Of a stretch of 64,000 nucleotides of DNA, positions 36,622-62,500 are shown piece after piece (within the stretch, counting starts at the first letter, position 1; each line of letters opens with the position of its first letter). Source of the stretch: Bugula neritina (taxonomy: Eukaryota; Animalia; Bryozoa); the NCBI GenBank assembly GCA_964035545.1, contig OZ037769.1, positions 15,344,633 to 15,408,632 of the forward strand, written 5' to 3'. The notes below the pieces were generated by a model, which saw nothing but the letters and a program-made list of their open reading frames with translations, was not told where the DNA came from and did no database searches. The position numbers and the translations under genes are program-made.

Positions 36622-39600
36622 ATGTCGGGAACTGCTGCGAGGTTAGTTCTTACTTTTTGTATTTAAATAAGAAGGTTTTCCTGCTACTTGATAATAATCT
36701 ACATTCATATGATAGTACATTTAAAACAAATGCTATTGCCCATTTCAATTTGTCTTTGAAAAAGCTAAAACTAAAAGTATAAGGCAAAAACAATCAGGAG
36801 CACAGTTACTGTTAGTGTTAGTCACTTAGTGAGTTATTGTTAGAATAAGTTATTGTTAGTGTGAGTATCAACGCAAAAACTATAAATAATAATATTTCAA
36901 TAATCATGACTAAATACTTAGAGTATAATCATAATGTAATTATATAATAATAATGATGAATAATATAAATATTAATACTAATACTAATAGTAATAGTAAT
37001 AAATTTACTTTTTAGGCTTACTAAATATCAGTCATACTTAATCTTATACTTATACTCGCATAATTATAGTAATCTTAGACTTAAAGAAATGTGTCAATTT
37101 CTGTATTAACATTAATCATTAATGTTTATATTGCTTAGTAAGTTGTAGTTGATATTATAATTGTTTTATTATGATCATCATCAAATTGAATTTGATATGC
37201 ATATTAATTATTAATAATATTCATTATGGTTATTATTGCACTTGAAGTTGATTAAATTTCAAATTTAAACTTGCTTAAACTTAAACTCGAACTGAGCTTG
37301 TAAACTAATATCCATAATTTAACTCACTTGAAGTTAATGATATTGATTATCGTAGTCATACTGATACTTGCTCTAAAACATTTGCCAAAGCCCAAGTTAA
37401 TACTGATAGTTTTGGTGATAGTAATAAAGCTAATTATTAATAATAATAATAATTATAGTAGTCACTATGACTATTACTATGAGCAATATTGATATTACTG
37501 GTACCACTATAACTATGAGTATATGTGTAACTATTTGATAATTAAAACTTAAAAGTCAAGCTGAAGCTGTAGGTCACCATAAACTAAATATAGTAGTAAT
37601 ATTAATTATTAGATAAGGAGTATTCATATTGTTAATACTCATGCTACTAGTTTTGCATTTAGTGGGTAAATTAAATGGAATATGCTTCTGTTGCTGCATT
37701 AACGAGTCAGTGCTGCATCCATTTCAAGGTTAATATTTGGATTTATTGGTTTAGTCAATGGTGCAATCATATCCATATTTATGCTAACAGAAGTTGTCAT
37801 GGTTAACTCATTCATAAATTGAGATTTAGCTTATCACATAACCATGTTGATATTAAATTTGATTCCATATACTTATTTAGACACAATATCAGCATGTGCT
37901 GATATTTACTGGTATTAAAATGATAATTTATGCGTTATCAAACCTAAAAGATGATTTGGATGATAATGACAATATTATAGTAATAGAAAGGATTATCATT
38001 ACTAGCATAAGTTGTAAGGATTCATTAGTGCAAGCTAGAATTATCATTGTGATGATAAGCACCAACACTAACTTCTATGAAAGTTAAAAGACCATAGGAT
38101 TAGTTAATATCAAATGCCATTGTAGTAAATGTAATGTTGTCATATTTGGTTATTTTATTTAAAAATACATTATATATATGTTTGTTTTTATTATGAACCT
38201 TCATTCATCTAACCTTACTCTAATCAGCTAGGCAGCTAAAAGCTTGATACTTATTTGAGTGACAATTGCTCAGGATGGCTAGTTTTTGCAATCCCTGTCT
38301 TGCATATTTATCATTTATTCATTTCTAAGATAGTGCAAGGCATAAATATTGTGATAAGATAAGAACCAACTTTTTAATACAACTCTGGGCATTTAGAATG
38401 TTTCCCTGGCTAACATTCTTACTAGTTTTAAAAAGTTGTCTTATGAAATGCTGGTACTCTGTAAAGCAGAAAAGTTGTATTTTAGAATAGTAATCTGATA
38501 AGACCATTTCCCACAATGCAATGAACCTTGAATACCATATTTTAAAATTTCATCGAAATAATCTTTTTCCTTATAAAATATGAGGTTGAATTTTAAAGAA
38601 AAGGTTTTTTGTTCCCATTATCTTTTTGCTTGCTAATTGTGGATCTTGTAGTTGTTCAGCTTTTAGTAGAAATGGCAAATAATATATCTACTTATAAATA
38701 GGCTCTATTTGTTTATATATTATGTGTTAAAATCCCAAATTGTTATAATTAGATTAATTGGCTAATTGTGCCACAAAGGTTAAGCTAATATTCTAGTTGG
38801 TCTATTAGGCTGCTTGTTGATTCCTATCAGATTAGCTGATATGGGCCAAAACATCATGTTTAATGATTTTGTCTGAATGCTTTGCAATTTTCAAAGTTCC
38901 TAAAACTTCTACAATATCAGGAGTTTGAAAATTGTACTTGTTATATTACATTTATTTGTGTTTAAAACTTTAGTTGAGGTGAAAGAATAGAAATTTAGAT
39001 GGTTTTGTTGAAATCTTCCAGTTGCAATGTGATGTTTTTGTTTAAATTTTTGTGATGTTTTTGTTTAAATTTTTGCGATCTTTCAGTTAAATCATGTAAT
39101 TTTGACCTCCAAGCTGGACTTTTCAAATTTAACTTCCTCCTTTTCTTCAATGGCCACACAGTGTTGAGGTAGGTGCAGTAATGGAGAAATTGAGAAAGGC
39201 CTGTGTTCTATAATATTAGAAATGGAGCATAAGAACTTATGTCCTCACAAAAATTTCAACCCGCTACCCAAACCAAAATCTAATAATAAAATTAAAACAC
39301 TTAGCCTGTCTCAATTTCTCCACTATTGCTCCTAAATGACAAATGATGGAACAGATTGTCACTGTTTACTCCAAAGGCGACATGCCGCACAAGTTGGCAC
39401 TGAGTGTGTTGGTTGTGTTGCAGCTTCGACAACTACCCCGACTTTGAGGGACACAAGCATCTGATTGGTAAACTGCTGACTCGAGAGCTCTACGACCAGC
39501 TCAAGGGCCTCAAGACTCACAGTGGCTGTACTCTCGACCGATGTATGCAAGGAGGGGTGGATAACTATGACTTCTCCGTCGGTGGGTTTCTCCTGTGCCC

Positions 39601-42600
39601 CCTCTGTATACACCCCACCTTTTGGCAGTTTGTGATGAAACAACTCACGACTAAACTATTTGTGTTGTAAAGCTGCCGTTTAGGAGCAGTAGTGGAGAAT
39701 TTGAGAAAGTCGAAGTTCTTTAATTTTATTGTCAAATTTTGGTTTGGGATGCAAATTGAAATTCTTGCAAGAACATATCTTCTTATGCTACATTTCTAAT
39801 CTGAAACACAGGCTTTTCTCAATTCCTCCATTACTGCACCTACATCAAAGCTGCTATTTCCATTATGAAAGTACAATCTAACGTATACTTGAAATAGATG
39901 CATGTCGCACTATGGCCGGAGTGTAGGCAGCATCTACAAGCTGTCATGTGATATTGTTCATGCTGGGCATTCATTACAATCATTAGCAGGACGCAATGTG
40001 CAGAGCATAAAGTCTACTTCAAAGGGCAGTTTGCTCTTTGCTTATTATAAACTTGTGAGACAGAAGTTTGCATTTAATACACACAAGTATTCAGACTATC
40101 TCCTAGTTTACCTGATGTTTACACAAAGTGTTAGCCTGCCTCTTCTCATCACTAAACACTGTATCATGCTCCGTGTATGCATGTAGTGCCCTGGGAATTG
40201 TGTTCCCCTAGAAGGGCAGTATATTGGTGGCCATGTTTGCAGGCTGTGCTATGGGAGACGAGGAGTCGTACACTCTCTTTGGGGACGTCATGTACAGTGT
40301 TATCGAGGGAAGACATGTTGGCTACAAGAGAACCGACATACATAAGAGTGACCTAGATCCAAGCAAGCTGATTGGTGGAGACCTTGACCCCAACTATGTC
40401 GTCTCGACTAGGGTATGTATAGCGGCAGCCACTTATGTCTGAGAGGCAGCAGCTTGTGGCAGCGTAGACTGGCAGCAGCTGCTGAGCTTAATAATCGTTA
40501 GTTGAAGCACTTGTCTGGTTGATTAGATACAACATGCCTTGTTGAGACTCTTATCTATCTCTGCGTCTCTCAACAACTGAATTTTCACGACTTAAATATG
40601 AAGCAAACTCAGCCTCTCTCTCAGTCTAACTGAACTTACAGAGATGTAGCGTCAGTTTTAGCTAGAGTTGTGTGATTTACAGTGTGAGCTGTGGGTTGTG
40701 TAGCTGATAGCATTGCCCGTGTTTTTATAGATCAGAACTGGTAGAAATGTGAGGGGGTACTCCTTGCCCCCGTACTGCACTCGATCTGAGAGACGAGATG
40801 TTGAGAGTATTCTGCTAGGAGCTTTGAGCAATCTCGATGGACCCCTTAAGGTGACAAAAACTTATTTTGTGTTTATCTTGACCTCGTATTCACTCTGCAA
40901 TTTGCTGGGTTACCACAAAAAAACCTTGAAATCTGAAGTAATAAAATAAAAAAAAAATTTCTCTAAAAATGTTGCCAGCTGTGGGTTTCACCACCACACA
41001 CGAGGTCGTATTGACTCAATAGTCGTTCTTCTGCAGGGTAAGTACTACTCGCTGGAGACTATGACTCTTGCTGATCAGGACCAGCTCATCGCAGACCACT
41101 TCCTGTTTGACAAGCCCATCCACGCTCACATGACTACTCAAGGTACGTTGCAGTATAACAGTAGTCACCTAGTAGTAATAGTCAGCTAGCTACTCTCTGT
41201 ACTTTAGTACAATGTTCAGTGTTCATGGCTCATCTCACACTACTGTTACGTAATCGATTGCTTTCTTCTTTAAATGACTGTTATATGAGCTGGCATGGCT
41301 ATGGTTTCAACTGTATATTCTAAAGTTTTTAACAGAAGGACTTTCCTGCATAGAGATGTAGATTTTATTTTCGAAACAGTAAGCTTTTCGATGTTATTTG
41401 TGTTGAAATGGCCACCTCAAATTTTCTGTGTAAATTGTTGATAATTTTAGAAGTTTTCATTTTATTCAATGCAGCATTCCAATCTCCCACAGAAAAGTTT
41501 ATTCAGTACAAACTTTTTCTAATTTCTGCTATCAGTTTAAACATTAAATGTTGAGCAAATATTACTTCTGCTGATATAACACTATCAGTTCTCTCTGTCG
41601 GCGTGATCAATTTGAGTCTTTGCGGCTGCAGGTATGGCACGTGATTGGCCAGATGCCAGAGGTATTTACCACAATGACGACAAGAACTTTCTGGTGTGGA
41701 TCAACGAAGAGGATCATAGCAGAATCATTTCTATGCAGAAAGGAGGGAACATGAAAGAGGTGAGTGTATAAACTCAGTTCTCAAGTACGACAACAACTCT
41801 ACTTATCTCAGCAACTGTAGAAATCTTATCAGTTTTACCTTCCCTGGGAGTTTGACACTAGCTGCGGTTTGCAAAAGCTGCTATGCCTACCTGGTGTTGA
41901 CTTTACTACCTTTACTGCTGAAATGTTCGATCAGAGAAGTTATCTCTATGGGTTAAGAAAGTCTTATCACTTCTTTTTCTCTCTGTTCAGGTGTTCACCA
42001 GGTTCTGTAAGGCTCTGCTGGAGGTTGAAAGGCTGATGGGCGAGCAGGGAGGGAATGAGTTCATGTTCAATGAGCACATCGGATACGTCCTCACCTGTCC
42101 CTCCAACCTGGGTACTGGCCTGAGGACCAGTGTCCACCTTAAGATCCCCAAACTGTCTGAACATCCCAAGTGAGTTCCGCAATGCTGCTCAGTTACCAGT
42201 GCTGTGTACTTTTCTGTATAGTAATAGTATAGTAGAAAGCATACTAATATATAATACACTATATAAACATCTCCTTTGTAATATCTGCACCATACTGTCC
42301 TGGTTTAACACTCATAGCTGTCTCACATACAGCCTCTAGTGTAAGGTGCAGTAGTTTTTCTTCTGCTTGAGCGACTAAAACTAGCAGTTGTTGGTGCGAG
42401 AGAGAGAACTGTTGGTGCACAGGCTAGAAGTTACAGTATAGTTGTATATATTGCTAGTTACAGCTCATACATGGCATTCGGTTGATTTCCTGTCAGGTTT
42501 GTCGAGATTTTGAAGAATTGTCGTCTGCAGAAGAGAGGAACTGGCGGTGAAGAAACGACCAGCACAGACGGTACATTTGATATCTCCAACTGGGACAGAG

Positions 42601-45600
42601 TTGGTAAAACTGAAGTAGAACTGGTACAGCTTGTTATTGACGGTGTGGAACTTCTCATCAAGATGGAGAAGAAACTGGAAAAAGGTGAGAAACTCCTCAG
42701 CAAATTCTCATTTTCTGTTTGCAATCAGTAAATAAACTTTTATTCTAAAAGGTCTGGTCACCAGGCAATAAGCATTCAGCTGTTATGTTATCTTTAAATA
42801 TTTATGTTTGGCAATCAATTACTTAATAGAAACTGATACTGCCATTGTAATGAAAGGTCATGTTGTGCGGAGGTAGACTTAGGGCAAATATAAATACCTC
42901 TTCAATGTTTGTAAAGTCTAAAGTTATTGAGCAATTACTGATATGCGTTAGCTGGGGTTTCTTTGAGTTGAGTGATAATGTATTGTCAAGTGTTGTAAGA
43001 TATTTGCTTTAAATGCAATTTTGAAAACCTGGGTATATCTTTGGAGAACTTTAGTCATGAAATATGTTGTAGAAGATGAGTTGAACTGTTCCATTGTTGA
43101 AACTTTTCCAACTGTTAATTTGGTATTTTTTATCGCGATTTTTGTGTGACAATCTGGCGTTTCTTATTCCATTACTACACCATCTAACCTACACAATGTT
43201 TGAAACATCTGAAGTGTTAAGGAACACGTTTAGTAAATCACAAGTTAGAACAAAATTATCAGAACTAAATCAAGAATACTTGAATATTAAAATACCAACA
43301 GTTTATCAGCCACCTTATTCTGGTATCGGCAGTATTTCCAGCTGCAAGTTGTACAGTACGCTCGGTGACATGAAATATATTGTGGGTAGAAGCTTGTATG
43401 TTTGCTTGTTGATAAAATCTCATCAGACATTGTCAAGTGGTACTCTAGCAGTCAAGGGGTACTCTAAAAGTCAAGTCGCACTATCAAAGCTGTTGGTTGC
43501 TATCATCTACTGCCACTTCAGTCTTGTAACTTGATTAAAAAAGCATACAAACTCACACCAGTTAATTAATTTATCCCTGTTCTTAATTAATTTTACAACA
43601 ATACAATTTTATACCACTGTGTGTAACAGCTGCAGCACTACCATATCAAGGGGGTTGATAAATGTAGTCTATATATTAGAGTAAGCTGCAGTGGAAGGGT
43701 GGGTAATGGGTTGAACCCTTATGCCATCTAGAGATATCTCTATCCACTCACTACCAGGGTTTAGTTGTCACCAGTTCTGGGCTGCTGAACAGCCAATCAG
43801 AGTCTACTGGACACTCGTAAATCTCTCTCTGTGTGTAGAGGAAGTGATGTCATATCTGTGGTGTTTTCAGGCGAGTCTATTGATGATCTCATCCCTGGAG
43901 AGGACGGATGTGCTCGACCTCCAGTTGGTGGACAGCCTCTGCAGATAGTAAGTCACTCTCTGTAATTAGCAAGTCACTCTCTCTCTCTGCAGATAGTAAG
44001 TCACGTTTCTCTGCAGATAGTAAGTCACTCTCTCTCTCTGCAGATAGTAAGTCACGTTTCTCTGCAGATAGTAAGTCACTCTCTCTCTCTGCAGATAGTA
44101 AGTCACGTTTCTCTGCAGATAGTAAGTCACTCTCTGTAATTAGCAAGTCACTCTCTCTCTCTGCAGATAGTAAGTCACGTTTCTCTGCAGATAGTAAGTC
44201 ACTCTCTCTGCAGATAGTAAGTCACGTTTCTCTGCAGATAGTAAGTCACTCTCTCTCTCTGCAGATAGTAAGTCACTCTCTCTGCAGATAGTAAGTCACG
44301 TTTCTCTGCAGATAGTAAGTCACTCTCTCTGCAGATAGTAAGTCACGTTTCTCTGCAGATAGTAAGTCACTTTTCTCTGCAGATGTTCCACACTAGTCAG
44401 TTGTTAATATTCATGTCTTAGTTGTTTTCTTGGCCTAAAACTTCATTCCTCATTCTGTATTCTACTTTGCAGTCAGTTTATATACTCAATACACAGTGTA
44501 AGCTGTGCGCGCTAAACCTGTGTCACGTGACCAAGTGTATCAAAATAGCCCATCAAATAGCTTATGAATTTCTTCATCTGATTATGAGCATCACATCACG
44601 TAGACAGTAGGTCATGCATATCGTGTCTTAATGTTCATCCTGTAGTCGAATATTTTAGTACTTTTAATGGCTGAGCCTTCTATAATCCTAAATAAACATG
44701 ATTTGCTTTGTCTACTGACTTGCAGTGAAATAAGACTACTTAATATCCTGCTGTTTGTAATTTTGTTTGACTTGAAATGTTTTTGTAATTGATTGGACAG
44801 GTTACTAACCAACTAGTTACTGAATTATATATAAGTGGGATACTCCACAATACAGAACACACATTAGCTAAGGATTTAAACAGTCTACCAGCATTTCTAG
44901 CAACTCATTTGACAGCAACTGTTGAAGCTTACTAACCTTTAAGCCATTCCAGTAATTTGCAATGTTGGTTGTTTTCCCCTTACTCTTGCATTTAGTTTAT
45001 ATTCCTCAACTCAAAACCCTGTTTAATATAGAATGCATTCAGAAACTAGATCACTGAGGCTAAGATTTAGATAGACTTCATTTCCTCTTCCCTTACAGAA
45101 AGCTCTTCACTCTGCTGAGTGGCGGGCAACTCCAAAAGCCGACAACTACCCCAAGCTGATTGTAAACCACCACAACGTGCTGTCAAAGGTGCTGACGCAG
45201 TCACTGTACAACTCTCTGCAGGGTAAAAAGACAAGCGGCGGCGTGACCCTTGACCTCTGCATCCAGACAGGTCAGTTTACCATTCATTGCGCTATCTAGA
45301 CTGGGCCTGTGGGTCACCTAGACTTGAAAATGTGTGAAGATTTTTTTACTAAAGCAAGTTGTTGGTGCAGTGAACTACTATTAAGGCAGACCTGTGCCAG
45401 CAAGCTGTTAGCAGTAGACTGTAGCAATCAGAGCCGCAACTGCTCTGCTAGGAGTTCAATCATCCGTCTGAAATAGCAAGTAGCAAGAAATGGTGAATGT
45501 CCAGCAGTAACTTTTCTCTCTAACCTATAATTTGATACCATGTAAGGCTGACAGAGGTGGGAGGGGTTGTGTGTTTGGCTTGATCAAGTTCTCTTAGACA

Positions 45601-48600
45601 TTATATGTTTGTGTACTGATGCTTCAGTCTTCATAAAACATTTACATTTTCAACATATAAACAAGCTGTCATGAGATGAAAGTTTTTGGAACATACTTGC
45701 TGTCTGTATGTCACTACTAATAATAACACTGCATGCTGCTTTAGGCTGTGACAACCCTGGCAGCGCTGACAACGTGGTGGCTGGTGCTGTCGCTGGAGAC
45801 GAAGAGTCGTACTCTGTGTTTGCTGACCTGTTTGATCCTATGATAGCAGCTCTTCACAACGGCTATGCTAAGGTACAGTGTGTAGTATCTAGTACAGTGT
45901 CTAGTGTCTAGTACAGTGTGTAGTGTCTAGTACAGTGTGTAGTGTCTAGTACAGTGTCTAGTGTCTAGTACAGTGTCTAGTGCCTAGTACAGTGTGTAGT
46001 GTATCTATTGCTATGTGTAAAAATGCAGGTTTTTCTCTAGCTTGGGCCTATAGTCCAACATATGATTGCTTTATTGCTTTACAAGTTATCACATGTAATA
46101 CTTTTACTAAAATTAGCAGTATTAAAACACTGCGCCTATCTCCATCTCTGCATACTATACTTCCATCCGGTGGAAATGTAAACCATGTGGTGGCAACAAC
46201 TCCAAATCCATTAGATTATATTTTTTTATGCGAGTTATTCTGCCCTGTGATCTGATATCAAATCATTGCCTGTCCCACAATGCAATAGCACAGGAAGACA
46301 GCATCAGGCCTTCCTCTAACCCAGATACCCTGCGTTACACATGAAATTGTGTAAAGAATTTGGGTTGTAAGCATTAATTATTCTGCAGTCTGGGATTTGC
46401 GTAGTTAATGGATGATTTAATTATGAGTTTGTTAATCTGTTATAATTGAGAGGTTGATGTTATACTTGAGACATCATTTAAAACAGTTATATATGCAGGT
46501 TTAATATACCACTAGAGTAGCTATAAATTGTGCATATATTCATACCATCTTCCAGTATTTAATGGTAACCCTGCTTTCTAAGAATACCTAGTCTAGTTTG
46601 CTGCAAATAAAGTTACTGGATTCATTAAAGTGCAGGCTACAGGAAGTACTGTAAGCATTATTATCTCCCCTGTAGGGAGCCAAACACCCGGGCCAGCTGG
46701 CTAAGTCTAAGCTCACCAACGCAGACCTGGACAAAGAGTTTGTCAAGGGCTGCTGGATTAGCGTATCAAGGAACATTCGGGGGTTCCAGCTTCTCCCCAG
46801 CATAGACCGGGCCGGTAGACGTACCGTGCAGAAGGTCGTGTCTGACGCTGCCTCCGCATTGGACGGACCCTTCAAGGTTTGACTCTGATTACGTTACCTA
46901 GCTGTGCTTAATATACCTGCAGATAATATCTGAAGATGACGCCTTGCAAGTAAAACCTGTTGGTGAATCTTTAGGTTGTAAAGCAATTTTTTCTATATGA
47001 TTGTTGATAAATTTTTAATTAATAAATCAAATAATTTGAAGATTAGCCACTTTTGAAAACATTTTTAGAAATTTTATTGGCTGATGGTATAAATATAACT
47101 GATTATTGTTGCTAAAGCTGATATAGAAAGCAGTATATTATTTATATTTTATCCACTAGTAAAATAGACTGTTTGTAGCACTTCTTGTACCATAATAGTG
47201 TAATGTTATTATACTACTCATATTATATTAGTAATAATATAGTACTATTAGTAGTATATTAATAACAGTATATTATTAATAATATACTGTTAATAGTACT
47301 ATGATATAATATTACTAATATGCTATTAACAGTATAAAGTTGCGTTTATACCTCTGCTGGAAAAAGTACCGAGTTCAAGTTAATAATGCTTGTCCGGGTA
47401 CCCCTTTATAGTCAAACTGAAACTCGTTGAAATCATATTGATGCGGTTGCTCACTTTCTGAAATTGAAATTTGACTCGCATAATAGCTATTTGATGCCCT
47501 TTGTAAACGTCGTGAATTAGTGAAGCGGAAAGCATAAAAGCGATAATTGAGAAGGCGTAGGCTATATAGTTATAACCGTATAAGTACGTTGTCTAATCGC
47601 CAAAGTAATAACTAAATAACGATGTTTACAAGGAGTTATTACTCCTATTCTAAAATTGGCCGATTAAGTTATCACAGTACAAAATTTTCAACGGGTGGCT
47701 TTTACAATGCAATGCAACTCGGAGAAATTTCAACCCGGCCAAATTGAATTTTTGACCGAAAATCGTGAAGGTATAAACGCAACTTAATAATAACAGTATA
47801 TTTTTAATATACTACTAATAGTAATAATAGCAGGTATGCATTACACAATGACGCTACTATTGAACACTGCAGGGACAGTACAGGACTCAGAAGAGTATGA
47901 GTGAAGAAGAGAGAAAACAACTCATAAAGGAGCACGTCATGTTTGACGCCATCAAAGACACCAACGTGTTCGCCTCTGGTGGGTTTATACTCTTTGGTAT
48001 ATACGGTATTATATTATACTATATACTCTTTGGTATATACTGTATTATATTGTACTATATACTCTTTGGTATATACTGTATTATATTGTACTATATACTC
48101 TTTGGTATATACTGTATTATATTATACTATGTACTCTTTGGTATATACTGTATTATATTATACTATATACTCTTTGGTATATACTGTATTATATTATACT
48201 ATATACTCTTTGGTATATACTGTATGATATTATACTATATACTCTTTGGTATATACTGTATTATATTATACTATATACTCTTTGGTATATACTGTATTAT
48301 ATTGTACTATATACTCTTTGGTATATACTGTATTATATTGTACTATATACTCTTTGGTATATACTGTATTATATTATACTATGTACTCTTTGGTATATAC
48401 TGTATTATATTATACTATATACTCTTTGGTATATACTGTATTATATTATACTATATACTCTTTGGTATATACTGTATGATATTATACTATATACTCTTTG
48501 GTATATACTGTATTATATTATACTATATACTCTTTGGTATATATGGTATTATATTATACTATGTACTCTTTGGTATATACTGTATTATATTATACTATAT

Positions 48601-51183
48601 ACTCTTTGGTATATACTGTATTATATTATACTATATACTCTTTGGTATATACTGTATTATATTATACTATATACTCTTTGGTATATACTGTATTATATTA
48701 TACTATATACTCTTTGGTATATACTGTATTATATTATACTATATACTCTTTGGTATATACTGTATTATATTATACTATATACTCTTTGGTATATACTGTA
48801 TTATATTATACTATATACTCTTTGGTATATACTGTATTATATTATACTATATACTCTTTGGTATATATGGTATTATATTATACTATGTACTCTTTGGTAT
48901 ATACTGTATTATATTATACTATATACTCTTTGGTATATACTGTATTATATTATACTATATACTCTTTGGTATATACTGTATTATATTATACTATATACTC
49001 TTTGGTATATACTGTATTATATTATACTATATACTCTTTGGTATATACTGTATTATATTATACTATATACTCTTTGGTATATATGGTATTATATTATACT
49101 ATGTACTCTTTGGTATATACTGTATTATATTATACTATATACTCTTTGGTATATACTGTATTATATTATACTATATACTCTTTGGTATATACTGTATTAT
49201 ATTATACTATATACTCTTTGGTATATACTGTATTATATTATACTATATACTCTTTGGTATATACTGTATTATATTATACTATATACTCTTTGGTATATAT
49301 GGTATTATATTATACTATATACTCTTTGGTATATACTGTATTATATTATACTATATACTCTTTAGTCTACACTATGCACACTCTTTGTTTAAGCATGCAA
49401 TACTATAATATTTCTTCTGAACTGAACAGGTGTAGCCAGGGACTGGCCGGACGCAAGGGGGGTGTTTTATAACGAAGCTAAGGACTTCATAGTCTGGGCT
49501 AACGTAGAGGACCACGCCCAGGTGCACTCTGCTCAGTACGGGGCCGACATGCAGTCCGTAAGTCTCGTTCACATTCTGACAAACAGAAGCAGGTGGTTTC
49601 AAGTCAAAATATATGACTACGAGTTTTTTGTTTTAACAATTAATTTGTGTAATTTTTCTCTGCGACTAACCTGTGATGTAGCTGATTGTACGTATCTTTC
49701 CGATGGTAGGTATTTGATAAGCTGTGTGACGGAATGGGCAAGTTTGAAGCTGCCGTTAAAAAGGGAGGAAAAGAGTTTATGCGAAATGACCATCTCGGCT
49801 ACATCGTAACTCGCCCAGAGAAACTCGGTACTGCTTTGAAGGCCGGGGTTAGCCTCAGCATCCCTAAACTTGCGGCTCATCCTAAAGTAAACGAGGTGGG
49901 TTTAGGCTCTGTACACTGCATGGTAGTATTTATAGTATGTTCTGTATTGTGTAGCTATTATATAGCGCTGTGCTGATTTTATTATTTTATATAATGATTT
50001 GTTTATTTATTGTTGGTACTTTTATCTGTTACTGAATTAATTTGTCATATACCATTTACTTAAATTTTATTATTTTGCACCATATTAGCAATTATCATGT
50101 TGAATTGTCCTGTGTTTGTTGATAAAGAGTGTGGTCGTTTTTTGTACCCCATTGCGCGCTTAGATGTGTGGAATCTTTTCTTTGAAGCCAGTTTCAGCGT
50201 TAATTGTATTAAAGATATATCTATTCTGATCCTTAATGTACTTCTATAATTATTGTATAACTTTATACTAACTGTCCTGTTTTGTGAAGTTATCTCCCCA
50301 CTGTATAACTATACTGTGTTGTGAAGTTATCTCCCCACTGTATAACTATATACTAACTATACTGTGTTGTGAAGTTATCTCCCCACTGTATAACTATACT
50401 GTACTGTGTTGTGAAGTTATCTCCCCACTGTATAACTATACTGTGTTGTGAAGTTATCTCCCCACTGTATAACTATACTGTGTTGTGAAGTTATCTCCCC
50501 ACTGTATAACTATATACTAACTATACTGTGTTGTGAAGTTATCTCCCCACTGTATAACTATACTGTACTGTGTTGTGAAGTTGTCTCCCCACTGTATAAC
50601 TGTACTGTGTTGTGAAGTTATCTCCCCACTGTATAACTATACTGTGTTGTGAAATTATCTCCCCACTGTATAACTATACTGCGTTGTGAAGTTATCTCCA
50701 CACTGTATAACTATACTGCAATGTGTTGTCTACCTCCAGCTGATGAAGGCCATGAAACTAGAAGACACAAAGTCATGTGAAGAGGGCAGACTTTATGTCC
50801 ATAACGAGGAAACTCTCGGATCCTCGGAGGTAGGTTTACACTCTCCTGTTTCAAGTCATTCACTCAAGTTACTTACTCAATTACCTAAGTCACTTAAGTA
50901 CTCGAGTACTTACAGCCTCCCACACTATAGATATTGTTACTTACTGTAGGCCTCTCAGGTCCAGTGTCTGGTGGATGGTGTACAGAACTTGATCAAGATA
51001 GAGAAGGCTCTGGCAGCCGGGAAAGATGCCGGCAGCCTCATTTCTCAAGCCATGTCTGGCAGGTGAGTCATTCTGACATTTCTAGTAGTAGTACTACAAA
51101 TATTTAAAGGGGAAGACAACTGCCACAGCATCTCTTCACTCATATTCCTATCTCTTACTTATTTATGTTTCAGCAAACTCTAA
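36622..51183 (+). CDS. PK2: two-domain phosphagen kinase paralogue ending in -SKL (PTS1), ~759 aa
   Basis: Exons: 36622-36641, 39424-39581, 40243-40412, 40731-40850, 41037-41142, 41632-41759, 41991-42169, 42497-42684, 43871-43947, 45099-45270, 45745-45872, 46676-46876, 47873-47978, 49430-49557, 49710-49895, 50740-50829, 50950-51062, 51174-51183 (2280 nt). D1 exon sizes are identical to PK1 (158, 170, 120, 106, 128, 179, 188). The first exon (MSGTAA+AG|gttagt) is the least certain. Confidence 0.9.
39165..39338 (-). mobile_element. Family A element, copy 5 (inverted)
   Basis: TGAGGTAGGTGCAGTAATGGAGAAATTGAGAAA...TCTCAATTTCTCCACTATTGCTCCTAAATG. Confidence 0.75.
39679..39847 (+). mobile_element. 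Family A element, copy 6
   Basis: TTTAGGAGCAGTAGTGGAGAATTTGAGA...TCTCAATTCCTCCATTACTGCACCTACATCA. Confidence 0.75.
43937..44383. repeat. 23-27-bp tandem repeat (TCTCTGCAGATAGTAAGTCAC...) reiterating a PK2 exon end and donor, ~16 copies
   Basis: Starts inside the exon 43871-43947; each unit reads Yn-CAG|ATA|GTAAGT. Confidence 0.92.
45873..46003. repeat. 19-bp tandem repeat (GTACAGTGTGTAGTGTCTA), ~7 copies, starting at a splice donor
   Basis: Directly visible. Confidence 0.9.
47338..47784. mobile_element. MITE with 16-bp TIRs and TAA target-site duplication (PIF/Harbinger-like), ~447 bp
   Basis: TAA|AGTTGCGTTTATACCT...AGGTATAAACGCAACT|TAA; interior less AT-rich than its flanks. Confidence 0.8.
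47986..49363. repeat. 36-bp minisatellite (GTATATACTGTATTATATTATACTATATACTCTTTG), ~38 copies, filling a PK2 intron
   Basis: Directly visible; source of the spurious 503-aa and 324-aa ORFs. Confidence 0.97.
50275..50718. repeat. ~37-bp tandem repeat (ACTGTATAACTATACTGTGTTGTGAAGTTATCTCCCC), ~11 copies, ending just before a splice acceptor
   Basis: Directly visible. Confidence 0.92.
51174..51183 (+). CDS. Terminal coding mini-exon of PK2 completing Ser-Lys-Leu-stop
   Basis: ...TCT GGC AG|GTGAGT (donor 51063), long pyrimidine tract ...TTTCAG|C AAA CTC TAA; AATAAA at 51436-51441. Confidence 0.8.
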
Positions 51184-53590
51184 GTGATGTGTGTTTAGAT
51201 TCTGACCATCTGATTGGCTGCTACTTAACTAATCACCAATCTGATTGGCTAACTCCAGCTACAGAAATTTCCTTGAACAAGTCTCTTCTAGTCCAGCTAA
51301 TTTATTAGTAGAGATGGTGGCAGTGGTTGCAAATATCTTGTTCTGTTATTCAAGCATTACCATTGGTTAAAGCGTTTTCACCACTTTACATGTCATATCT
51401 TTCTCTGCAGCTGTAGTCTGTTATTTTTCTCAAACAATAAAATATTATCAAGTGCAACCCTTTCTATATTGTATATGCCCACACATTACACACGTAGGGT
51501 GCACAACTCCAATATAATTTCTAAAGTATATATTTTCAAGTATCAAAACTTTTTGCAGGAATTAAAGTGGAGCTTCTTAGCTCTACACAAATAATTTGCA
51601 TGTTTCTAGTGTTGTGTAGGGGCTTCATTCCGCCCTCCCATAATTATTAGAAAAGTTCTGCACTAAGCTATGTGCAGCAATGCAGAACTGGCTGTTCATT
51701 AGAAATGAGACTAATGAGTGCATAAGGCTCACTAAAACTCGCACGTAATAAAAGTAATATTCAAGATAATAAAATAATTACAAGATAAATATTGATATAT
51801 TAATAGATAGTAGATTGTGGGTGTGAAAGAAGGCTGTGTTTATAAATAAACATGGTGTCAAACTGCTCTGACAATATAATTCTATTTACACTTCCAGAGT
51901 CTATATAAACTATAAATTAGCTGAAGCACTGCTTTTTTCTTCATTACATATTGTTTGTGTTCATATATGACTGCTAATGCAGATTGCCCCTATGCCTGCC
52001 CGCACAAGCTAGGATTGGGCTGTTCTTGTATAGATTCTACTGGGTCGAAATGCTGCAAAAAGTAATTACCATCTAATTGGTTGGCTACTATTTAACAACT
52101 CATTTTTCAGTTTTATATTGATTATCTCATTAAATTGCTCATTCGTGGAACTAGCAGTTGTTGTGTTTTAAATGTATAGAAATATTTATTGTCGAAGACT
52201 GAAAGAAAATAGCAATGTGGAAAAGGTTATATCGTAAGCTATAAGTTGCAAGTTACAAGTGTGAGACGCAAGAGTGTGGATAAGTGAAAATTTTTGGGTT
52301 TTTATACCAGTCAAAAAGGTTAGCTTTTGTGTAGTAGCTATTATGAATGTGGAAAAAAGCATAATATAGCTGGTCTAGCTGAGATGATATGTGAAAAGCT
52401 ATCATGCATTAGGTAAAAGCTTTTCCAGCTTATGCAAAGTCCCAACAGCAGTAATATCACAAAATTAAATAGTTTATAATCAAGCAATCATGGACAATTA
52501 TTTCGGGCAGGTAACTCCCATACGTCCTATCTTATGCCCTGGTAATAACTTATATTTGTACAGTAAGTTGTAAATGCAACTAGCATCTATAATGCAACTA
52601 CAGGATGGAAATATTTCCAGCAACACCTCAAAAGCCTATTTCGAGGGGCTTGTATATCATAAAGTAATGGACTTTCGTTTTCCTCATTATAGTATTAACT
52701 ATCAATTAGTATAACCATGAGGTGATCATCTATCCAGTATTAAGTATTAATTAGCCTATGTTTGCATGCATAGGTAGGCATGATTACATAATATTATGAG
52801 AGCAATCAAATCTAATTTCAGAGCTGCAGGTAAAATATAGGTTTAATCTTTGGCTCATCATTAAACCTTTATAGGGGATTCCAAAAAGATTGCATGTGTT
52901 CTGTTCTAACATGCTCGTATAATTTTGCAATTATTCTTACATTCTGTCATGGGGTTTAAACTGCTATATTCTGTATAATTTATTATAGAATGCAACCACA
53001 CATATTTTTGTTTAAGTGTCTTTGAGAAACGTTACTTTTCAGCAGTTTACCTATTAGTGCTTGGAAAAGATGCATAAGACCTTTGGATAGAATATTATTG
53101 TTTTCAAGCTGCTTCAACTAAGTTTAGATTGTGAACTAATAGTTACAAATGATACCTCAGAATAGAAACTTTCTCACTAAAAGGCTAGTTTAAACATAAC
53201 CGATGCACTACTTAGATAGACTACTACTTACTACTAACACCTTTAATAATGCGATATCTTACGTCTGCATGGTACCAGCATGCAAACTAATTATATACAA
53301 CATGCTGCAGCATATAGAAAGTTGTGAATACCTTCTCTAATACGCATAACCTTTATAATCAATAAAATCAATTGTTCGCTCGTGGCTTAACAAATATACT
53401 TCACAATGGAATGAATTGTTTACAGCTTGCCGATGACCAAGAGCTTGCCAATCGGCTTCTACAACGATTTATAGCAATTCACCGGCAGCATTACTGAGTG
53501 TTTAGTTGATCAGCTGAGTGTGTGGTTGATGTCAGAATGATAACAGGTGTAGCTCTGATTGTACAGACAGTGAGGAGTTACTACAGAAAG

Positions 53591-56500
53591 ATGAGCTCAG
53601 GCAGGTACGGCTAGTGAAGCTTGATGTGTTGATAGGACTTTATTGTGTCTTGAGTTATATTTATATTATGCTTTTTCAAATCTCTGCCAAAATTAATGAG
53701 GTGGGTGCAGTGAAGAAAAAATAGAGAAAGTCCTGGGTTCTAGATTAGAAATGTTGCAAAGGAAGTTATGAAACTTAAAGAACTTGGGCTATTAAAATTT
53801 CTCCTCTACTTCACCTAAATGTTGTGATTAGAGTTCATATTATATCCTATGTGTCTGCATGTTAAGTGTATAGTGTATAGAGATCATTTGAGTATTGCTG
53901 CGCTTCCAAGCTTCGAATCATGTAAATGGATTTTTCATTTGATGTTTGGGTTAGGAACAGTTGCATCTCATGAGAACACAACCATAAGTTAATGCAACTG
54001 CAACCACACACATATATCCCCATAATCCGAAGTAATACGCCCCCCCTCTCCCCCTACTGAATAGACAATTGTACGCTACTACTCTACTATGTTAGGGCTA
54101 TACTTGGGTATCCACTGCTATTTACTACATGGGGTATTCTGCTACACTCCTGTATAGTATATGTATGGGGTACTTTGCTACACTCTTGTATACAATGGAG
54201 TTTGCTAAGGGCACTACTGCATTAATTTATTGAACTCACTGTTTGCTTTTGCTGCAAGTTCAGGTATTGTAATTCAGGCAGCACGTAACGCTGCCTTTAG
54301 TTCAGGCGAAGTTGATTACTCTGTTGGTAACAACTTGCTTCCAACACAAGAGAAGATAAATCTACATACTCGTTTCAAGTTTTACCATCACTATAAAGTT
54401 GAAAAAACATTTTAGTAGATTAAAAAATAGCAAATGCATTGTGTTTCACATAGATTTAAAAATAAGTTTATATCATTTTTATATTACGAATTACTTTACC
54501 ATTTGCCATAACATAATAATGTAAAAAGTGTTCCATGTGTTTTATTAACCCTGAATCTATTTAACCCAGTGCTCCTATCTTCCTATACTAGCTCTATGCT
54601 ATTTTTAAAGACAACAGTTTACCAACAGAGCTCTGAATGCCTCTTGCATAGCAGCTACCAGAAAAGTTTTTTTTTGAGCAGCCATGTTGGAACATGGCAA
54701 CTGCTCTTTAAAAGTTTGAGTCTTATTTAAATCCAGTCTGCTTTACTAATGGCTCAATTATTTTGAAAAGCCTTTGATCATTTGTTTATCCCTAACAGTC
54801 TTGCTTCAAAAAGCTATAGTCATTATAGGTTTATAGTTCATTTAATAATTAAATGTATGCGTCTAATGACTGCCTAATGTTTTTAAATTATTTTCCCTCC
54901 TGTATTATATGCTCTGACATTCGCGGAGTGAAACATTTAATTACTGCTGCAAGTAGGTTCTGCTATTAACTAATTACAAGCAATGTTAATGAGTTTGTAT
55001 TTATCTCATGGGAAATGTGGATGAAATTTCTCCCACCCTTTCAAAAACCGAGCCACTTCTGCAGCTTGTTAGACTGCTACATTGTAACCAACTTGGAATA
55101 CTCATGCATACAGAATAAGTACAGACAAACTCCAGAAGGAAATCATCACATTTGCTGCTGCTCGCTACTTCCTGTTGATGCCTTAGAAGAATTTCTCTCT
55201 GTAGCTTAGTTACTGAGTTCATAGTACTTGCTTTGTATAGTATACTTAGCTTAGCTTAGTGCGCATTTTACCAACTCCTTCACAACTTTCCAATAAAAGC
55301 TGTAATATATTTTTCGTTTTGGGGTTAAAACTTCTAAATCCATGCAATATTTTCTTTTTAATTTTAAATATTTTTATGTTATCAACGTTATATATATTAT
55401 GTAGTTGTTTATTTGCAGCTTTTTTACTTGATTTAAGTCAAAAAAATTGATAAAATTCTATCGGTCAATTTCCCATTAGTTCCACAATAATAAATTTGAT
55501 ATTAGCATTTCAAGCTGACATTATATAATGTCAAGCCAATGTCTAAGTACACAGAATCTTGTCTGTAATATTGCCAGTTAACTTTTCCTTCTTTATTTTA
55601 TTTTCAATAATGCGTTGTTGACATTCAGAAAAATAAATAAGCTGTAATTTATAGCTATAATATATACTATGCAGACATTGGACTTCTCTTAACATTGTTC
55701 TGTGACTCTATAAACCTTTTTGTGATTGGCTAGTTTTGCTAATTCATGCGTGTGATATAACATTACATATATGACATATTATGTTATATTATAATATATT
55801 ACATAACGAGGTATTACATGACATATTATTGATCAATGAAAAGGACATTGTGCTGGAAATCTAGACAATTCTCAGACTATGTAATCTCTTTAGTTGGGGA
55901 GGTATTTTATTGATCTGCATTCAACTGTGTCTAGATAAGCTGTACCCTAATCGGTTTAAAGTTTATTATTAAATTAAAATTATAGCCAAAATTTAATAAT
56001 AATTCTCAAACAATAGTTTGTATGGAAGCAAAGCAGTGAAGCTAGGCGAAATTTATTAGTACACTATGTAGATAACCTAAGTGCAGTATTGAATGGAAGA
56101 TATTATCTCTTCGGCAAAAAAATATTATGTTTACTTTTTTTCTTTATACGAAGAGTTTGAGCTATAAAGGAGTTTCTGGCAAGCAGCAGTTTATAGGTGT
56201 TGGTTCCCATTAGGTTACGTGCTGTTTGTACTACTCTCTGATATTATTTGGCATTTCCAAAATATTGAAGTAATATTATATTATTATTTCCTGCAGCTTG
56301 CTCTATTATATAACAGAATTAAATTATTACTCTACATGCGTTCTATTGGATCCATTATAGGCATCAGCTGCTTGAATACCATCAGTGGTGGATGAAAATC
56401 TGTGTACCCAACTTAGAGGGGGAATTTTAAATCAGAAACAATAAAAAATAGAGCAGTGATAAATAGCTGCCATTTTTATTTATTTCTTAAAAAATTAAAA

Positions 56501-59500
56501 CTTATTTTGTTTTCCTTTTCGACAAATATAATGCAAACTATACATATTTGTGCTGATGCTGTTGCAAGAGTAACCCCCAAGTTTGTAATTATTTGGCTAC
56601 ACCTAATAGGTTAAAAATAGAAAGCTGTTAAGCACACAAATATATATCCACGTAATATAACCTTTAATATTCACTTTCATACCTGCAGCCAGAGGGTTTA
56701 AACAAACTCTTTTTTCTTTCACCACTTAGCCACAGCTACTAGTAGAATTCAAAATGTCCGGTAACAGGTTTGTACTTTAGATTATGTTTTATAGATTTTA
56801 GTATGCAATAAGTTTATGGGTTGCCTAATTGAATTTTATTTCGTTATAGCAAATATAATCATTTATATTAATATTACTTAAAATATTTAATAGAGTAAGA
56901 AAAAGTATTATAATACACCATTTAATTTAAAACATAGTATGGGTATTTATGTAAAAAAATTAAAAATTTTAAAAAAGTTACTAAAATTTGTAGCATTTTA
57001 ATGTAGAAATCACTATCAAAGCTGCACTTTCTATTATTCAATTACTGGCTGTTTAGACTTTCCCGTTATTTTTATGTTCCCCTCCAAGAGTTGACAACTG
57101 CTAGCTCAAACTACTTTATTAATACATAGCCATATGCATAAATGAGAGAGGATAACCCTTATTGGAATATAATCATTGTAATCATTTTAAAAACTGCGTT
57201 TTCTATGTAGCTGTGCTTAGAATATTTTCATTTCTCATTTATTGTAGAATTTAAACTGTGCTGCCAATTTAAAAGCACTATTTTGTTTGGATCACCAAAA
57301 CTAGGTGATCAAATATAGAGCTAGATAGTACAATCTAGAGCTAGGTGGTGCATTGCAAAGCTATAGGTAGTGCAATGCAAAGCTAGGTGGTACAATATAG
57401 CTATGCTTTGACTTTAGGAACAGAACCATGTAATGTAATTTTTATTAAGGTTGTAATTGGCTTTTTATGACTACTGTATAGCAGCAAACTAATAAATGTA
57501 CTCATAAAATCTAATGCAATGTTATATAACAAGTGCTTAGTTATTATATATTATATACCGAGCACATTACTGCCACGGCCTTGCCTTATAAGCTTAACAT
57601 TATTCAGAAATTATTATTATTCAACTATAACTCCTTTCATATCTTAGAATATTATGCACCCACACACTGCATAGCCTGTGGCCTCACTCACTAACTTACT
57701 GCATAGCCTGTAGTCTGCATAGCTTGTAATCTCACTTGTCAACTCATGTATTACATAACATTGTTTGAATTCAATAACCACTTTAACAACTGGTATTGTT
57801 ACCTCCTTATATACACCTTTTCACTTAGTATAAAGTCCCTGCATTTCATTGGTCAATGCCACACAATAGTTTCACCGGTAGACCAGAATTCTTTGCAAAC
57901 TTTACCGGCATCTTTGCTCAGTTGCACTCATTTGTTGACTGCTGCCTGGTGTGTAATTTGCTGACTCTGCATCTAAACCGCTGCTTCTAAATAATCACAA
58001 TGTCTTCAGGAGGGTATGTGTCCTACTATAATATCCTTCTAATACTTACCTTGTAACATGTTGTATATGTTATTAAGTAGACCTTGCGTATATCTTGTAT
58101 TATTTACTACATATAAAAATTATAAAGCAATTTGCAAACTTTTAGTTGTAAGATTTTTGGCAAAAGTTTTTACTATAACATTTTGGTACTGATGTGTTGG
58201 CTGTGCAAGAATTTAGTAAACACATTTAGCCTACTCTCTGGAATATTATGCTGCAAGTACACATGCACTTGGGTTCTTTGGTTATTTAACAGAACTGGAT
58301 AACATCTTGAATGGTCTATTAAGTGCAGCATATATGTTGTGGCTATCAAACCATCATATTATACTCAAAACATCAGGGCTTTAGGTCTTCCATCCACTTG
58401 TTCGTTATGTTCATATTAATATTTCTCTCCTAAACTATTAGGATAAAAATACTGGACTGAATATCTCATTATTTAAAATAAAATACTGTTTACTAAATTA
58501 TTTAATATATTTGAGGATAATGATGTAGGTGCAAACATTTCACCTTGTAGGCTTATGTGCAGCAAGCTCACACCATTGGCTAAAATATCCTTTATACCTG
58601 CTAGGGTGCGAGTTTATGCCTTGCTGCATCCCAGCTAATGTAGTGCAAGCAGTAGAAATAGAGAAACACAATGAAATTAACTCTGCAGTTATGTGCTCCA
58701 TAATAGTTAGGCTAGCATTTGCTAAGCTTATTCAAAGCTTGAAGGCTTGTTTATGTTCTTTTAGGAACAACAGACTTCGAATTAAATCAATTTATTGAAC
58801 CCAATCAATATTTAAAAAGCCTTAATGTTACATTTCAGTGAATACAGTACACCCAAACAATACACCAGCCTTAATGTCATTCACACTTGCAGTTTAGAAA
58901 ACTTAAATCTAAGTTATACTTTTTTTACATTAAATCTTCATGACTACATAGTTTTATCAATCACCCAGTATTTTACTCGAAACTCATTTACAGTATCAAA
59001 TTTGTCTATAGGTAAAAATGTGGAGAATAATATTTTTATTTCCACACAATGCTTATATTTTATGCTATCTAAGTAAAAATAAGTAAAAAGAAAATGTATT
59101 TTATAATGTTTTATATTTTTCTAACTAGCTATGATATATAGATATGTTAACAGAATAGTGCTCTTATATTCATTATAGCGCCTTTTAAGGGAAATGATTA
59201 AATTAATTAAATAAAATTCTGTCCAAAACTATGGAAAGCTGCACAAAATTACATTATATGTTTTTAATAACATAAAGCCTTCTGTATTATTACAATATAT
59301 AACAACTATTATTGACATAACATGTTGTTTGTTTCTCTGTAGTTTTGACCGCTACCCCGACATGGAGGGCCACACCCACTTTGTCTCCAAGAATCTCACT
59401 CCTGAGATTTACGACAAGCTGAAGGACTTGAAGACAAAGAGTGGATACACCATTGACAAGTGCATTCAGGGGGGCATTGACAACCCCAAATTCTCTGTTG

Positions 59501-62500
59501 GTGAGTGTTCGGGTTTTTGTTCCTATGTTTATACTTTTACCATATTATAATCTTTCAGTTCCGATATTCGTATTCCCCACTATCACATGTGTCAATTAAA
59601 AGTGTCACATGTGTCAATTAAAAGTGTCACATGTGTCAATTAAAAGTGTCACATGTGTTCTTTTGCCAAAGTGTCACTTTTGTCATGCTTGTCAAAATGT
59701 CACTTTTGTCATGCTTGTCAAAGTGTCACTTTTGTTATGTTTGTCAAATGTGTCATATTGATCAATGTGACACACATGTCAAGTATGTTAAGATGGCACA
59801 TGTGTCATGTTTGTTAAAGTGGCACATGTGACATGTATGTTAAGGTGACACATGTCAAGTATGTTAAGGTGACACATGGGATATATTTGTTAGAGTGGCA
59901 AATGTGACATGTCTGTTAAGGTGACATATGTGCCATTTGTGTTAAGGTGACATGTGTGACATGTATGTTAAGGTGCTACTGGTGGAGATGAAGAGACTTA
60001 CACTCTCTTTGGTGATCTGATGTACGGCATTATCGAGGGAAGACATGTTGGTTTCAAGAGAACCGACATACATAAGAGTGACATGGATTCCAGCAAGCTG
60101 ATTGGTGGAGACCTTGACCCCAACTATGTCCTCTCTAGCAGAGTGAGTTCTTATATAGAGATCATTGAAATGAAATGGCATTCTTTTTGTCTCAACTGAA
60201 TGAGAATCATGGAGTTATCTGTTCATTGTAAAACTTGCCGGCTTATAGATTAGGATGTAAAATAGTAAGATGAAAAAATTAATTTAACGTAACTGAATCG
60301 GTATTAGGTACAAGTTGATTCAACACAATAGATTTCGGTTATTGTGTAGATTTATCAGTACAAACGAGATCTTTGTTTGTAGGTTCGAACCGGAAGAAGT
60401 ATTCGAGGATATTCTCTTTCTCCATTCATCACTCGGGCCGAAAGACGAGATGTCCAGGATATCCTTCTTAAGGCTCTGAGCAATCTGGAAGGACCTTTGA
60501 AGGTGAGAAGATAACTCTAATCTACAAGCAAGTTTTACAGTTAGTTATTCTGCCATTATTTTACACATGCATAATTTTCCAGGGCAAATTTTACTCCCTG
60601 GAGACAATGACCCCAAAGGATCAGCAACAACTTATTGATGACCACTTCCTGTTTGAGAAACCAACTGATACTTTTATGACGGACACAGGTGAGTTAGGAA
60701 CTTTTAATTGTTCAAGCCACACCACTTAATGCTGGGTCAACAATTGTAAGCACGATTACAATTATCTTCAGGTATGGCACGTGACTGGCCAGACGCCAGA
60801 GGTATTTACCACAATGACGACAAGAACTTTCTGGTGTGGATCAATGAAGAGGATCATAGCAGAATCATTTCTATGCAGAAAGGAGGAAACATCAAACAGG
60901 TGAATGGGACAGTTGGAGCAATAAGAATTACTCTTTTGTAAATATTTTAAAGGTTTTTATAGTGAATTTCCATGTGCAAAAATTAGCTTTATGTTGTCTT
61001 TAGGTCTTTGAAAGATTCTGTGCTGGAATCAACCAAGTTGAGAAGCTGATGGCTGAGCAGGGAGGAAATGAGTTCATGTTCAACGAGCATATCGGATACG
61101 TCCTGACCTGTCCCTCCAACCTGGGTACTGGACTCAGAGGTGGAGTTCATGTTAAGATCCCTAAACTGTCTGAACATCCCAAGTGAGTGATTGTGGAATG
61201 ATTGACTCTTGAGTTAATTTAAGTAATATAGCGAAAGCACACCTCATTCCAGATCAACTACACAAATTCATTGTCATTCTCATCTTTTGAAAATGTTGTA
61301 AACCTCTACTGTCAGGTTTGATGAGATTTTGAAGAACTGTCGTCTGCAGAAGAGAGGAACTGGTGGTGAGACAACTACCAGCACAGATGGTACATTTGAT
61401 ATCTCCAACTGGGACAGAGTTGGTAAAACTGAAGTAGAACTTGTACAGCTTGTTATTGACGGTGTGGAACTTCTTATCAAGATGGAGAAGAGACTGGAAA
61501 AAGGTAAGAGAAGCCATATTAAAACGCTATGGTTCACTGAGTTGATCAAAGTGATTCTGAATTTTGTTAAGAATTTACTTGTTATATATTCTATATTTAT
61601 TATTACAGGGGAGAGCATTGATGACATTCTTCCAGGACCTGATGGCGCATGCCCTCGTCCAAAGGCTCCTGGAAAAGCGCTAGATATAGTATGTACAGAG
61701 TCATGTTCATTCTAATCACTATTATATCATCTGTTATATACACTTCGTTTGGAGAAAACAACTTCTACTGTTCCTTTGGTATATCTAAATTACAGGCTAC
61801 AATAGCAAACAATATCATAGATTGCTATTTTTGTTGAATCTTTACAATAAAGGTGTTTTAGTCTTATTAACGTAGTTGATCATTCTGTATTAATGGATGC
61901 TTTATACGGACAACTGTAGAAAGCAATCCATGATTACAAATGGCGAGCAACTCCAAAAGCTAGCAACTTCCCTAAGCTACACAAACACAACAACCTCTTG
62001 GCAAAAGTTCTAACAGAGGAACTTTACAATGACCTCAAAGGCAAGGAGACAAAAGGCGGAGTAACTCTAGATGACTGTATTCAGACAGGTGAGTGTAAAA
62101 CCCATCCCCTCTCCTTCTAACTTATGTATGCAACGTGTGCTTTAACTATATGATACGGTGTGTCATATTGAGTGAGAGTCAGTCAAGTTAAGTCACAATG
62201 AGTCAAACTAAGTCAAAGTAAACCATAGTCAGTCACATTAAGTCAAAGTAAGTCACAATGAGTCAAATTAAGTCAAAGTAAACCATAGTCAGTCAAAATA
62301 AGTCCTGGCAAAACACAGGGAATCAAACTGATGCAAACTGAATCATATTATTACACTTCTGTAGGACACAAAACAAATCTGGTAAACAAAATATGAATCT
62401 ATAATTTAAAAAATGTAGCCTCAAATCTAAATCTTTACTTTCAGGCGTAGACAATTTAGGAGAAGCTGGGGCAGAGCCAGTGGGAGTAACAGCCGGAGAT

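Follow-up and report, generated by a model that had tools for sequence, protein, structure and literature searches.

An apparently constitutive 10-nt last exon adds a predicted peroxisomal targeting signal to a probable two-domain phosphagen kinase of the bryozoan Bugula neritina

We analysed a 64,000-nt stretch of the genome of the bryozoan Bugula neritina (positions 15,344,633 to 15,408,632 of the forward strand of contig OZ037769.1, assembly GCA_964035545.1), referred to here as the window. It contains a tandem cluster of three paralogous genes of the creatine kinase (CK) family of phosphagen kinases, in each of which a first domain (D1), a linker and a second domain (D2) follow one another. 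The subject of this study is the second paralogue, in which a short terminal intron precedes a last exon with only ten coding nucleotides, and the protein thereby acquires the C-terminus -SKL, the canonical tripeptide of the peroxisomal targeting signal of type 1 (PTS1). A first-pass annotation made from the sequence alone had described this end for a phosphagen kinase designated PK2, and had proposed that PK2 might buffer ATP in peroxisomes and be switched by splicing. The gene in the window in all likelihood encodes a two-domain phosphagen kinase of the CK family with roughly 760 residues. The features of the locus are listed in Table 1.

The acceptor of the last large coding exon (exon H) reads ...ctgtag/GCC at 50949/50950, and its donor is CAG/GTGAGT. 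Across the joint, the leftover AG and the first C of exon I code for Ser, which is followed by Lys, Leu and a stop codon; unspliced, the frame runs through the donor as GGC AGG TGA, and the protein would end in -SGR. An index search for RNA returned 12 small RNA-like runs from five studies, plus one DNA run, and four of the runs (X1, X6, X9 and X12, from four studies) were aligned as contigs to positions 50719-51600. The joint 51059->51171, which skips 111 nt with GT..AG ends and is equivalent to 51062/51174 when the cut is shifted by +3, is present in contigs of all four runs. The preceding intron (50830-50949) is likewise removed in all four, and in X6, X9 and X12 one single contig each carries both junctions. 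In addition, an X1 contig has a loose end of 24 A residues after 51457, 16 nt beyond the AATAAA signal, and an X6 contig enters Illumina adapter at 51442. Because the introns are missing, and in view of the poly(A) end in X1, the adapter in X6 and the RNA-Seq label of X9, these contigs represent cDNA. The 10-nt exon is therefore not a chance reading of DNA, and we regard the exon and its splice as virtually certain to be real. The 10-nt last coding exon, the canonical tripeptide in the mature mRNA and the -SGR end of the unspliced frame all proved to be as the first-pass annotation had described them.

That annotation had also called for a comparison of spliced and intron-retaining RNA at this junction. 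An intron-containing contig was found in X1 only (51097-51200), with a depth of 9.7 versus 3349-5370 for the spliced form (~0.2-0.3%), as would be expected of pre-mRNA or traces of DNA. None was present among the contigs of X6, X9 and X12 on 50719-51600. Since the intron is seen in one run only and at so small a fraction of the spliced depth, terminal splicing looks essentially constitutive, and exon I looks like a fixed micro-exon, not a switch, with the limit that contigs drop rare variants, so that rare isoforms could be missed in the four samples compared. Substantial shares of both isoforms, as expected under splice-regulated dual targeting, were not found in the contigs of the four runs, and the proposed switch by splicing was thus not borne out.

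The exons of the gene were searched singly, and in the resulting model every boundary is AG/GT and the phases are continuous. D2 exons matched the Pfam families PF02807 (E-values of 1e-8 and 3e-10) and PF00217 (1e-9 and 5e-11), and D1 exons matched PF00217 (60-64 bits). The F/G exon junction of D2 is also visible in loose ends of RNA contigs. Several findings connect the two domains. A start codon is lacking in the unit from exon A to exon I (45099-51183); at its front stands the acceptor of exon A, whose phase 0 matches that of the donor ATA/GTAAGT of the eighth D1 exon. One X12 contig of 2610 nt extends 2141 nt upstream of exon G, which equals 921 nt (D2 exons A-F) plus 1126 nt (the eight D1 exons) plus 94 nt, and thus requires at least 94 nt upstream of the first D1 exon. 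Furthermore, a GenBank model (436 aa; PF00217, then PF02807) on L003:324-5816, in contig VXIV02002630.1 of assembly GCA_010799875.2 (referred to here as L003), bridges D1 into D2 exons A-C, and the D1-linker-D2 layout recurs in the paralogues. For these reasons, PK2 is very probably the second domain of a two-domain protein and not a gene of its own. The public annotation divides the locus (L003:324-9321) into this 436-aa model and a 210-aa model, KAF6024028.1 ('CKM [Bugula neritina]', our fragment P0003), which shares 98% identity with exon F and in which exons D-H recur. The C-terminus of the 210-aa model is wrong (...SQA-IFYLVEMLQKAVII), so that the SKL end is missing from protein databases.

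Table 1. Features of the SKL gene and its paralogues (positions in the window; strand and basis where given)
Feature	Position	Strand	Description	Basis
Tentative promoter and first exon	38693-38857	+	TATAAATA at 38693-38700; ATG at 38841; candidate donor AT/GTTTAA after 38857	
Domain 1	39424-43947	+	Intact CK-type phosphagen kinase	AG/GT flanks, continuous phases, PF00217, motifs
Domain 1 exons, first four	39424-39581, 40243-40412, 40731-40850, 41037-41142	+		
Domain 1 exons, last four	41632-41759, 41991-42169, 42497-42684, 43871-43947	+		
Inter-domain intron	43948-45098	+	Donor ATA/GTAAGT; acceptor CAG/AAA at 45098/45099; both phase 0	
Domain 2 (PK2), exons A-G	45099-50829	+	Probable pseudokinase	Pfam, alignments to solved structures of CK, glycocyamine kinase and taurocyamine kinase
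Domain 2 exons A-D	45099-45270, 45745-45872, 46676-46876, 47873-47978	+		
Domain 2 exons E-G	49430-49557, 49710-49895, 50740-50829	+		
Exon H	50950-51062	+	Last large coding exon; ends ...LISQAMSG plus leftover AG	Sequence, translation, RNA contigs
Terminal intron	51063-51173	+	111 nt, GTGAGT...TTTCAG, pyrimidine-rich 3' end	Sequence, RNA contigs, other assemblies
Exon I, coding part	51174-51183	+	C AAA CTC TAA, giving -S-K-L-stop	Spliced junction in four of four runs
3' untranslated region	51184-51457	+	AATAAA at 51436-51441; poly(A) addition at ~51457	Contig coverage, poly(A) loose end
Paralogue 1	19306-29784 (domains ~22.3-29.8 kb)		D1-linker-D2; starts MGCGGS at 19306	
Paralogue 2 (SKL gene)	38693-51457	+	D1-linker-D2; ends SKL	
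Paralogue 3	59340-64000, onward in L001 to ~7000 (ends ~66 kb)		D1-linker-D2; ends SGKVKV	

At the 5' end, the candidate first exon would code for M-G-Q-N-I plus two nucleotides of the next codon. Its phase suits the first D1 exon, it is unconfirmed by reads, and the block that contains it is the sole stretch upstream of D1 with 95-100% identity to L008 (background ~85%), one of two JGI metagenome contigs (L008 and L009) used for comparison. No first exon conserved between the paralogues was found upstream of D1. Another candidate at 39150-39168 was rejected because of an in-frame TGA, a wrong phase and its position in a dispersed repeat whose orientation in L008 is inverted. This repeat (39164-39331, just upstream of the first D1 exon) lies inverted elsewhere in L008, has a 78% copy at 53697-53770 and is probably a mobile element. 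Two tandem repeats were found within introns of the gene. The one at the inter-domain intron (43937-44384; 24/51-nt unit, ~18 copies) reiterates the end of the eighth D1 exon and its donor (CTCTGCAG ATA GTAAGT), giving a row of decoy acceptor/donor pairs, and is much shorter in the draft assembly. The other, in the intron between D2 exons D and E (47986-49363; 36-nt unit, 38 copies, 97% matches), gives rise to a spurious open frame of 503 aa beginning in exon D; when the stop-free frame 47864-49405 was used for a search, scored on residues 1-40 (exon D), there were zero matches.

The two domains differ in their catalytic residues, which we numbered according to rabbit muscle CK through alignment to 2crk. 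The catalytic set of D1 is complete, including the LQKRGTGG motif, and the whole protein therefore still counts as a phosphagen kinase; judged by its residues, D1 would be the active cargo. In D2, the equivalents of R130 and R132 are Trp and Ser (aligned to CRIRCGRSVKG of glycocyamine kinase), NVEDHAQ in place of NEEDH(I/L)R gives E231V and R236Q, and the alignment to solved structures gives C283R, S285E, N286K and R292K. KLEDTKS in place of LQKRGTG makes R320 a Thr, a position placed by eye against D1, and the next loop is ~7 residues shorter; exon G (30 aa) had no match in the PDB. The five phosphate-binding Arg are thus replaced by W, S, Q, K and T, Val stands at E231 and Arg at the Cys of CPSNLGT, and D2 is most likely catalytically inactive. 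With seven catalytic residues lost (R130, R132, E231, R236, C283, R292 and R320), PK2 would itself be unable to buffer ATP, contrary to what the first-pass annotation had supposed. Its assignment to the phosphagen kinases stands in that the family domains are present; what changes is that the domain is degenerate and, very probably, joined to an intact kinase domain upstream.

D2 is nevertheless under strong purifying selection and is not decaying. Compared with the draft assembly, in which introns are ~12% diverged, it has 37 changes that are synonymous and 6 that are not, which corresponds to a ratio of non-synonymous to synonymous substitution rates (dN/dS) of 0.042; for D1 against L003 the ratio is 0.017 (counts were summed exon by exon). 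A pseudogene interpretation of D2 was rejected on the basis of this ratio and of its expression.

Among the three paralogues, D1 exons are up to 95-98% identical and D2 exons 48-74%. The first D1 exon, which bears the specificity loop (39424-39581; paralogous at 22269 and 59344), is only 58-63% identical between them, and the guanidino substrate may differ between the three active domains. The D2 domains of paralogues 1 and 3 are degenerate at the same positions as that of the SKL gene, and catalytic loss therefore predates the triplication. The ends of the three proteins are different. After a common ...SG, paralogue 1 reads on as DVKPKE...KTE-stop, a Pro/Glu/Lys-rich acidic tail, and paralogue 3 as KVKV-stop; the N-terminal MGCGGS of paralogue 1 appears to be of the lipid-anchor type. 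At the DNA level, the paralogue sequences GGC GAC GTC AAA and GGA AAG GTC AAG resemble GGC AG/G TGA GTC in the SKL gene, from which we infer that the terminal donor arose in former coding sequence after duplication. The SKL exon thus looks like a post-duplication innovation that would give this copy a new address. Within the 3' untranslated region (UTR) of the SKL gene, CTGATTGGCT, which is a CCAAT box in reverse complement, occurs twice in 51205-51250 at a spacing of 30 nt, and GATTGGCT motifs resembling it are also found downstream of paralogue 3 (L001 ~7090-7140).

Genome-wide, PF00217 matches are confined to this cluster and one other intron-containing gene. As the scan shows exon-sized matches only, a processed retrocopy was considered an unlikely source of the intron-less contigs. 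The sole other phosphagen kinase gene found in the genome (L002; G000:C4:20580000-20589999, minus strand) has a mitochondrial-type N-terminus (MSRLVAVCSSIGLAAGG...) and the altered motifs TSPADLGTGMR and NERDHAR.

L003, L008 and L009 share with the window, without any change, the donor CAG/GTGAGT, acceptor TTATTTATGTTTCAG and exon CAAACTCTAA. The terminal intron itself is 111 nt in the window, 234 nt in L003 and 351 nt in both L008 and L009, a difference accounted for by a GTA/CTA microsatellite. The RNA contigs likewise show many single-nucleotide polymorphisms (SNPs) in the 3' UTR and zero in the ten coding bases of exon I. Over 38900-51600, the introns are ~11-14% diverged from these three assemblies with a dS of 0.16-0.30, and the RNA contigs carry at least three genotypes, a pattern that fits the existence of cryptic species in 'Bugula neritina'. 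None of the 270 phosphagen kinase homologues retrieved ends in a PTS1 of the form [SAC][KRH][LM]. A search of a representative library with exon F yielded fragment models of the same gene and generic or multi-domain phosphagen kinases (no PTS1 end among 150), and one with fragment P0003 gave 4 matches. The 120 matches listed for a two-domain CK (P0005) were all flagellar-type CKs, none of them from Bugula and none with a PTS1. No orthologue from beyond the Bugula neritina complex emerged from the searches with P0003, P0005 and the exon D frame.

Several features of the protein and of the genome make peroxisomal import plausible. The contigs of the four runs place SKL, a tripeptide of the above form, directly before the stop codon of the mature mRNA. 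Asp, Glu and Pro are absent from the last 12 residues, which reach ~5 residues past the aligned C-terminus of CK. A match to Pex14_N was found in the genome (31.5 bits, above the Pfam cut-off), and the last exons of three acyl-CoA oxidase (ACOX) paralogues end in -AKL, -SQL and -ANL, indicating that the PTS1 import pathway and typical cargo signals are present. On balance, the protein is probably at least partly peroxisomal.

Phosphocreatine has a mass of ~211 Da, phosphoarginine ~254 Da and ATP 507 Da, and ATP needs carriers to cross the peroxisomal membrane. The mouse Pxmp2 channel gives nearly free passage to solutes of up to 200-300 Da and restricts those of 300-600 Da (PMC2662417). We propose the following sequence of events. 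The terminal intron, placed between exon H and what was formerly the 3' region, is removed essentially always, so that the mRNA ends in ...AMSG-SKL-stop; PEX5 would bind the free -SKL and bring the folded protein into the peroxisomal matrix, where D1 would interconvert a small phosphagen and ATP. A phosphagen of ~200-250 Da would pass the membrane pore, with ATP dependent on carriers, and because the phosphagen would enter freely, a matrix kinase could regenerate ATP.

Known systems provide partial parallels. Trypanosoma brucei TbAK2 is a glycosomal arginine kinase with the PTS1 -SNL, and its sister isoforms are flagellar or cytosolic (PMC3679164). As in the SKL gene, a phosphagen kinase paralogue is set apart from its sisters mainly by terminal targeting sequences, including a C-terminal PTS1. 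However, TbAK2 is a single-domain protein of a protist, its SNL is part of a 14-residue extension coded by a single exon, experiments have shown its location and its organelle is the glycolysis-containing glycosome. Cryptic PTS1s are exposed by alternative splicing or stop-codon read-through in fungal GAPDH and PGK and in mammalian LDHB and MDH1. These enzymes resemble the Bugula protein in that the tripeptide is coded beyond the body of the main open reading frame and is added by an RNA-level event at the 3' end. In those enzymes, however, the event is partial and leads to dual localization, whereas the Bugula splice is essentially constitutive. Regarding architecture, both the D1 and the D2 exons match multi-domain phosphagen kinases best. 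Like three contiguous two-domain enzymes, Anthopleura arginine kinase (PDB 4rf6) and the taurocyamine kinases of Schistosoma (PDB 4wo8) and Clonorchis (PMC3836730), and like the three-domain flagellar CKs, the protein would carry tandem kinase units on one polypeptide. Those proteins keep their catalytic residues and, among those retrieved, have no PTS1, in contrast to the conserved pseudokinase domain and SKL tail of the Bugula protein. Full-text searches of the literature found a peroxisome-class location of a phosphagen kinase only in trypanosomatids, and a PTS1-bearing phosphagen kinase has so far been documented only in trypanosomes.

Taken as a whole, we favour, with modest confidence, the reading in which a two-domain kinase with a constitutive -SKL tail is imported into peroxisomes. 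A number of points weigh against it. The location is inferred from a predicted PTS1, and the nearest relatives, flagellar CKs, suggest a ciliary or flagellar role. Conservation of the tail was observed within the Bugula neritina complex only, and the invariance of only ten bases among close lineages is statistically weak evidence. X9 is marked RNA-Seq and the other runs were labelled RNA by guess only; the reads did not show the joint 43947/45099 itself. The N-terminal exon is a candidate, and its Met-Gly start might add a lipid anchor, that is, a competing N-terminal signal. Finally, the specificity ('GS') loop of D1 is 4 residues shorter than that of CK, so that its substrate may differ.

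An alternative that we consider unlikely but serious is that -SKL is made with little or no function. The protein would then be chiefly cytosolic, or ciliary, flagellar or membrane-associated, and turnover of the 3' end following duplication would have left the terminal intron and SKL behind as a neutral by-product. The kinship with flagellar-type multi-domain CKs and the possible N-terminal anchor would fit it, as would the free divergence of the three paralogues beyond ...SG, and ten nucleotides with the 3' UTR's SNP density would be expected to show only ~0.7 changes. However, no PTS1 tripeptide is stronger than SKL, the ...AMSG linker that carries it beyond the normal CK C-terminus is small, non-acidic and probably flexible, such an end has no counterpart among the family members retrieved, and the exon and its splice sites remained unchanged while the intron tripled in length. 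Regulated intron retention as a switch between a peroxisomal form with -SKL and a cytosolic one with -SGR is very unlikely. The retained form would be nearly identical apart from the signal, and splice-dependent exposure of PTS1 occurs in fungi, but a single contig of trace depth in X1 is all that the four runs offer for it. It is more improbable still that PK2 is a single-domain gene in its own right, whether for an active kinase or as a pseudogene in decay, and that the long contig is an assembly join: a contig spanning two genes is no proof of one transcript and GenBank does divide the locus into two models, but exon A lacks a start codon and fits the last D1 exon in phase, the upstream GenBank model already crosses into D2, the paralogues share the layout, the dN/dS of 0.04 excludes decay and the lost catalytic residues speak against activity.

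Under the favoured reading of peroxisomal import, our results would fit a re-addressing after tandem duplication, in which a two-domain kinase-plus-pseudokinase was moved to the bryozoan peroxisome by a new SKL micro-exon and phosphagen shuttles high-energy phosphate in through the non-selective pore, allowing ATP to be regenerated there; we put this full scenario forward tentatively, as slightly less likely than not. The sequence predicts a peroxisomal phosphagen kinase, which would be the first in an animal, but is no proof of one. With its split annotation and the wrong C-terminus of KAF6024028.1, the gene would be missed by proteome-wide PTS1 screens. If the prediction is true, it would reveal a phosphagen-borne regeneration of ATP in animal peroxisomes that has not been described before. 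The supply and buffering of peroxisomal ATP are only partly understood, and a resident phosphagen kinase would constitute a carrier-independent route. The locus would also represent a clean natural example of neo-localization, in which paralogues combine a conserved catalytic domain and diverged pseudokinase domains with different terminal tags, and this copy owes its tag to a new intron with the 10-nt exon behind it.

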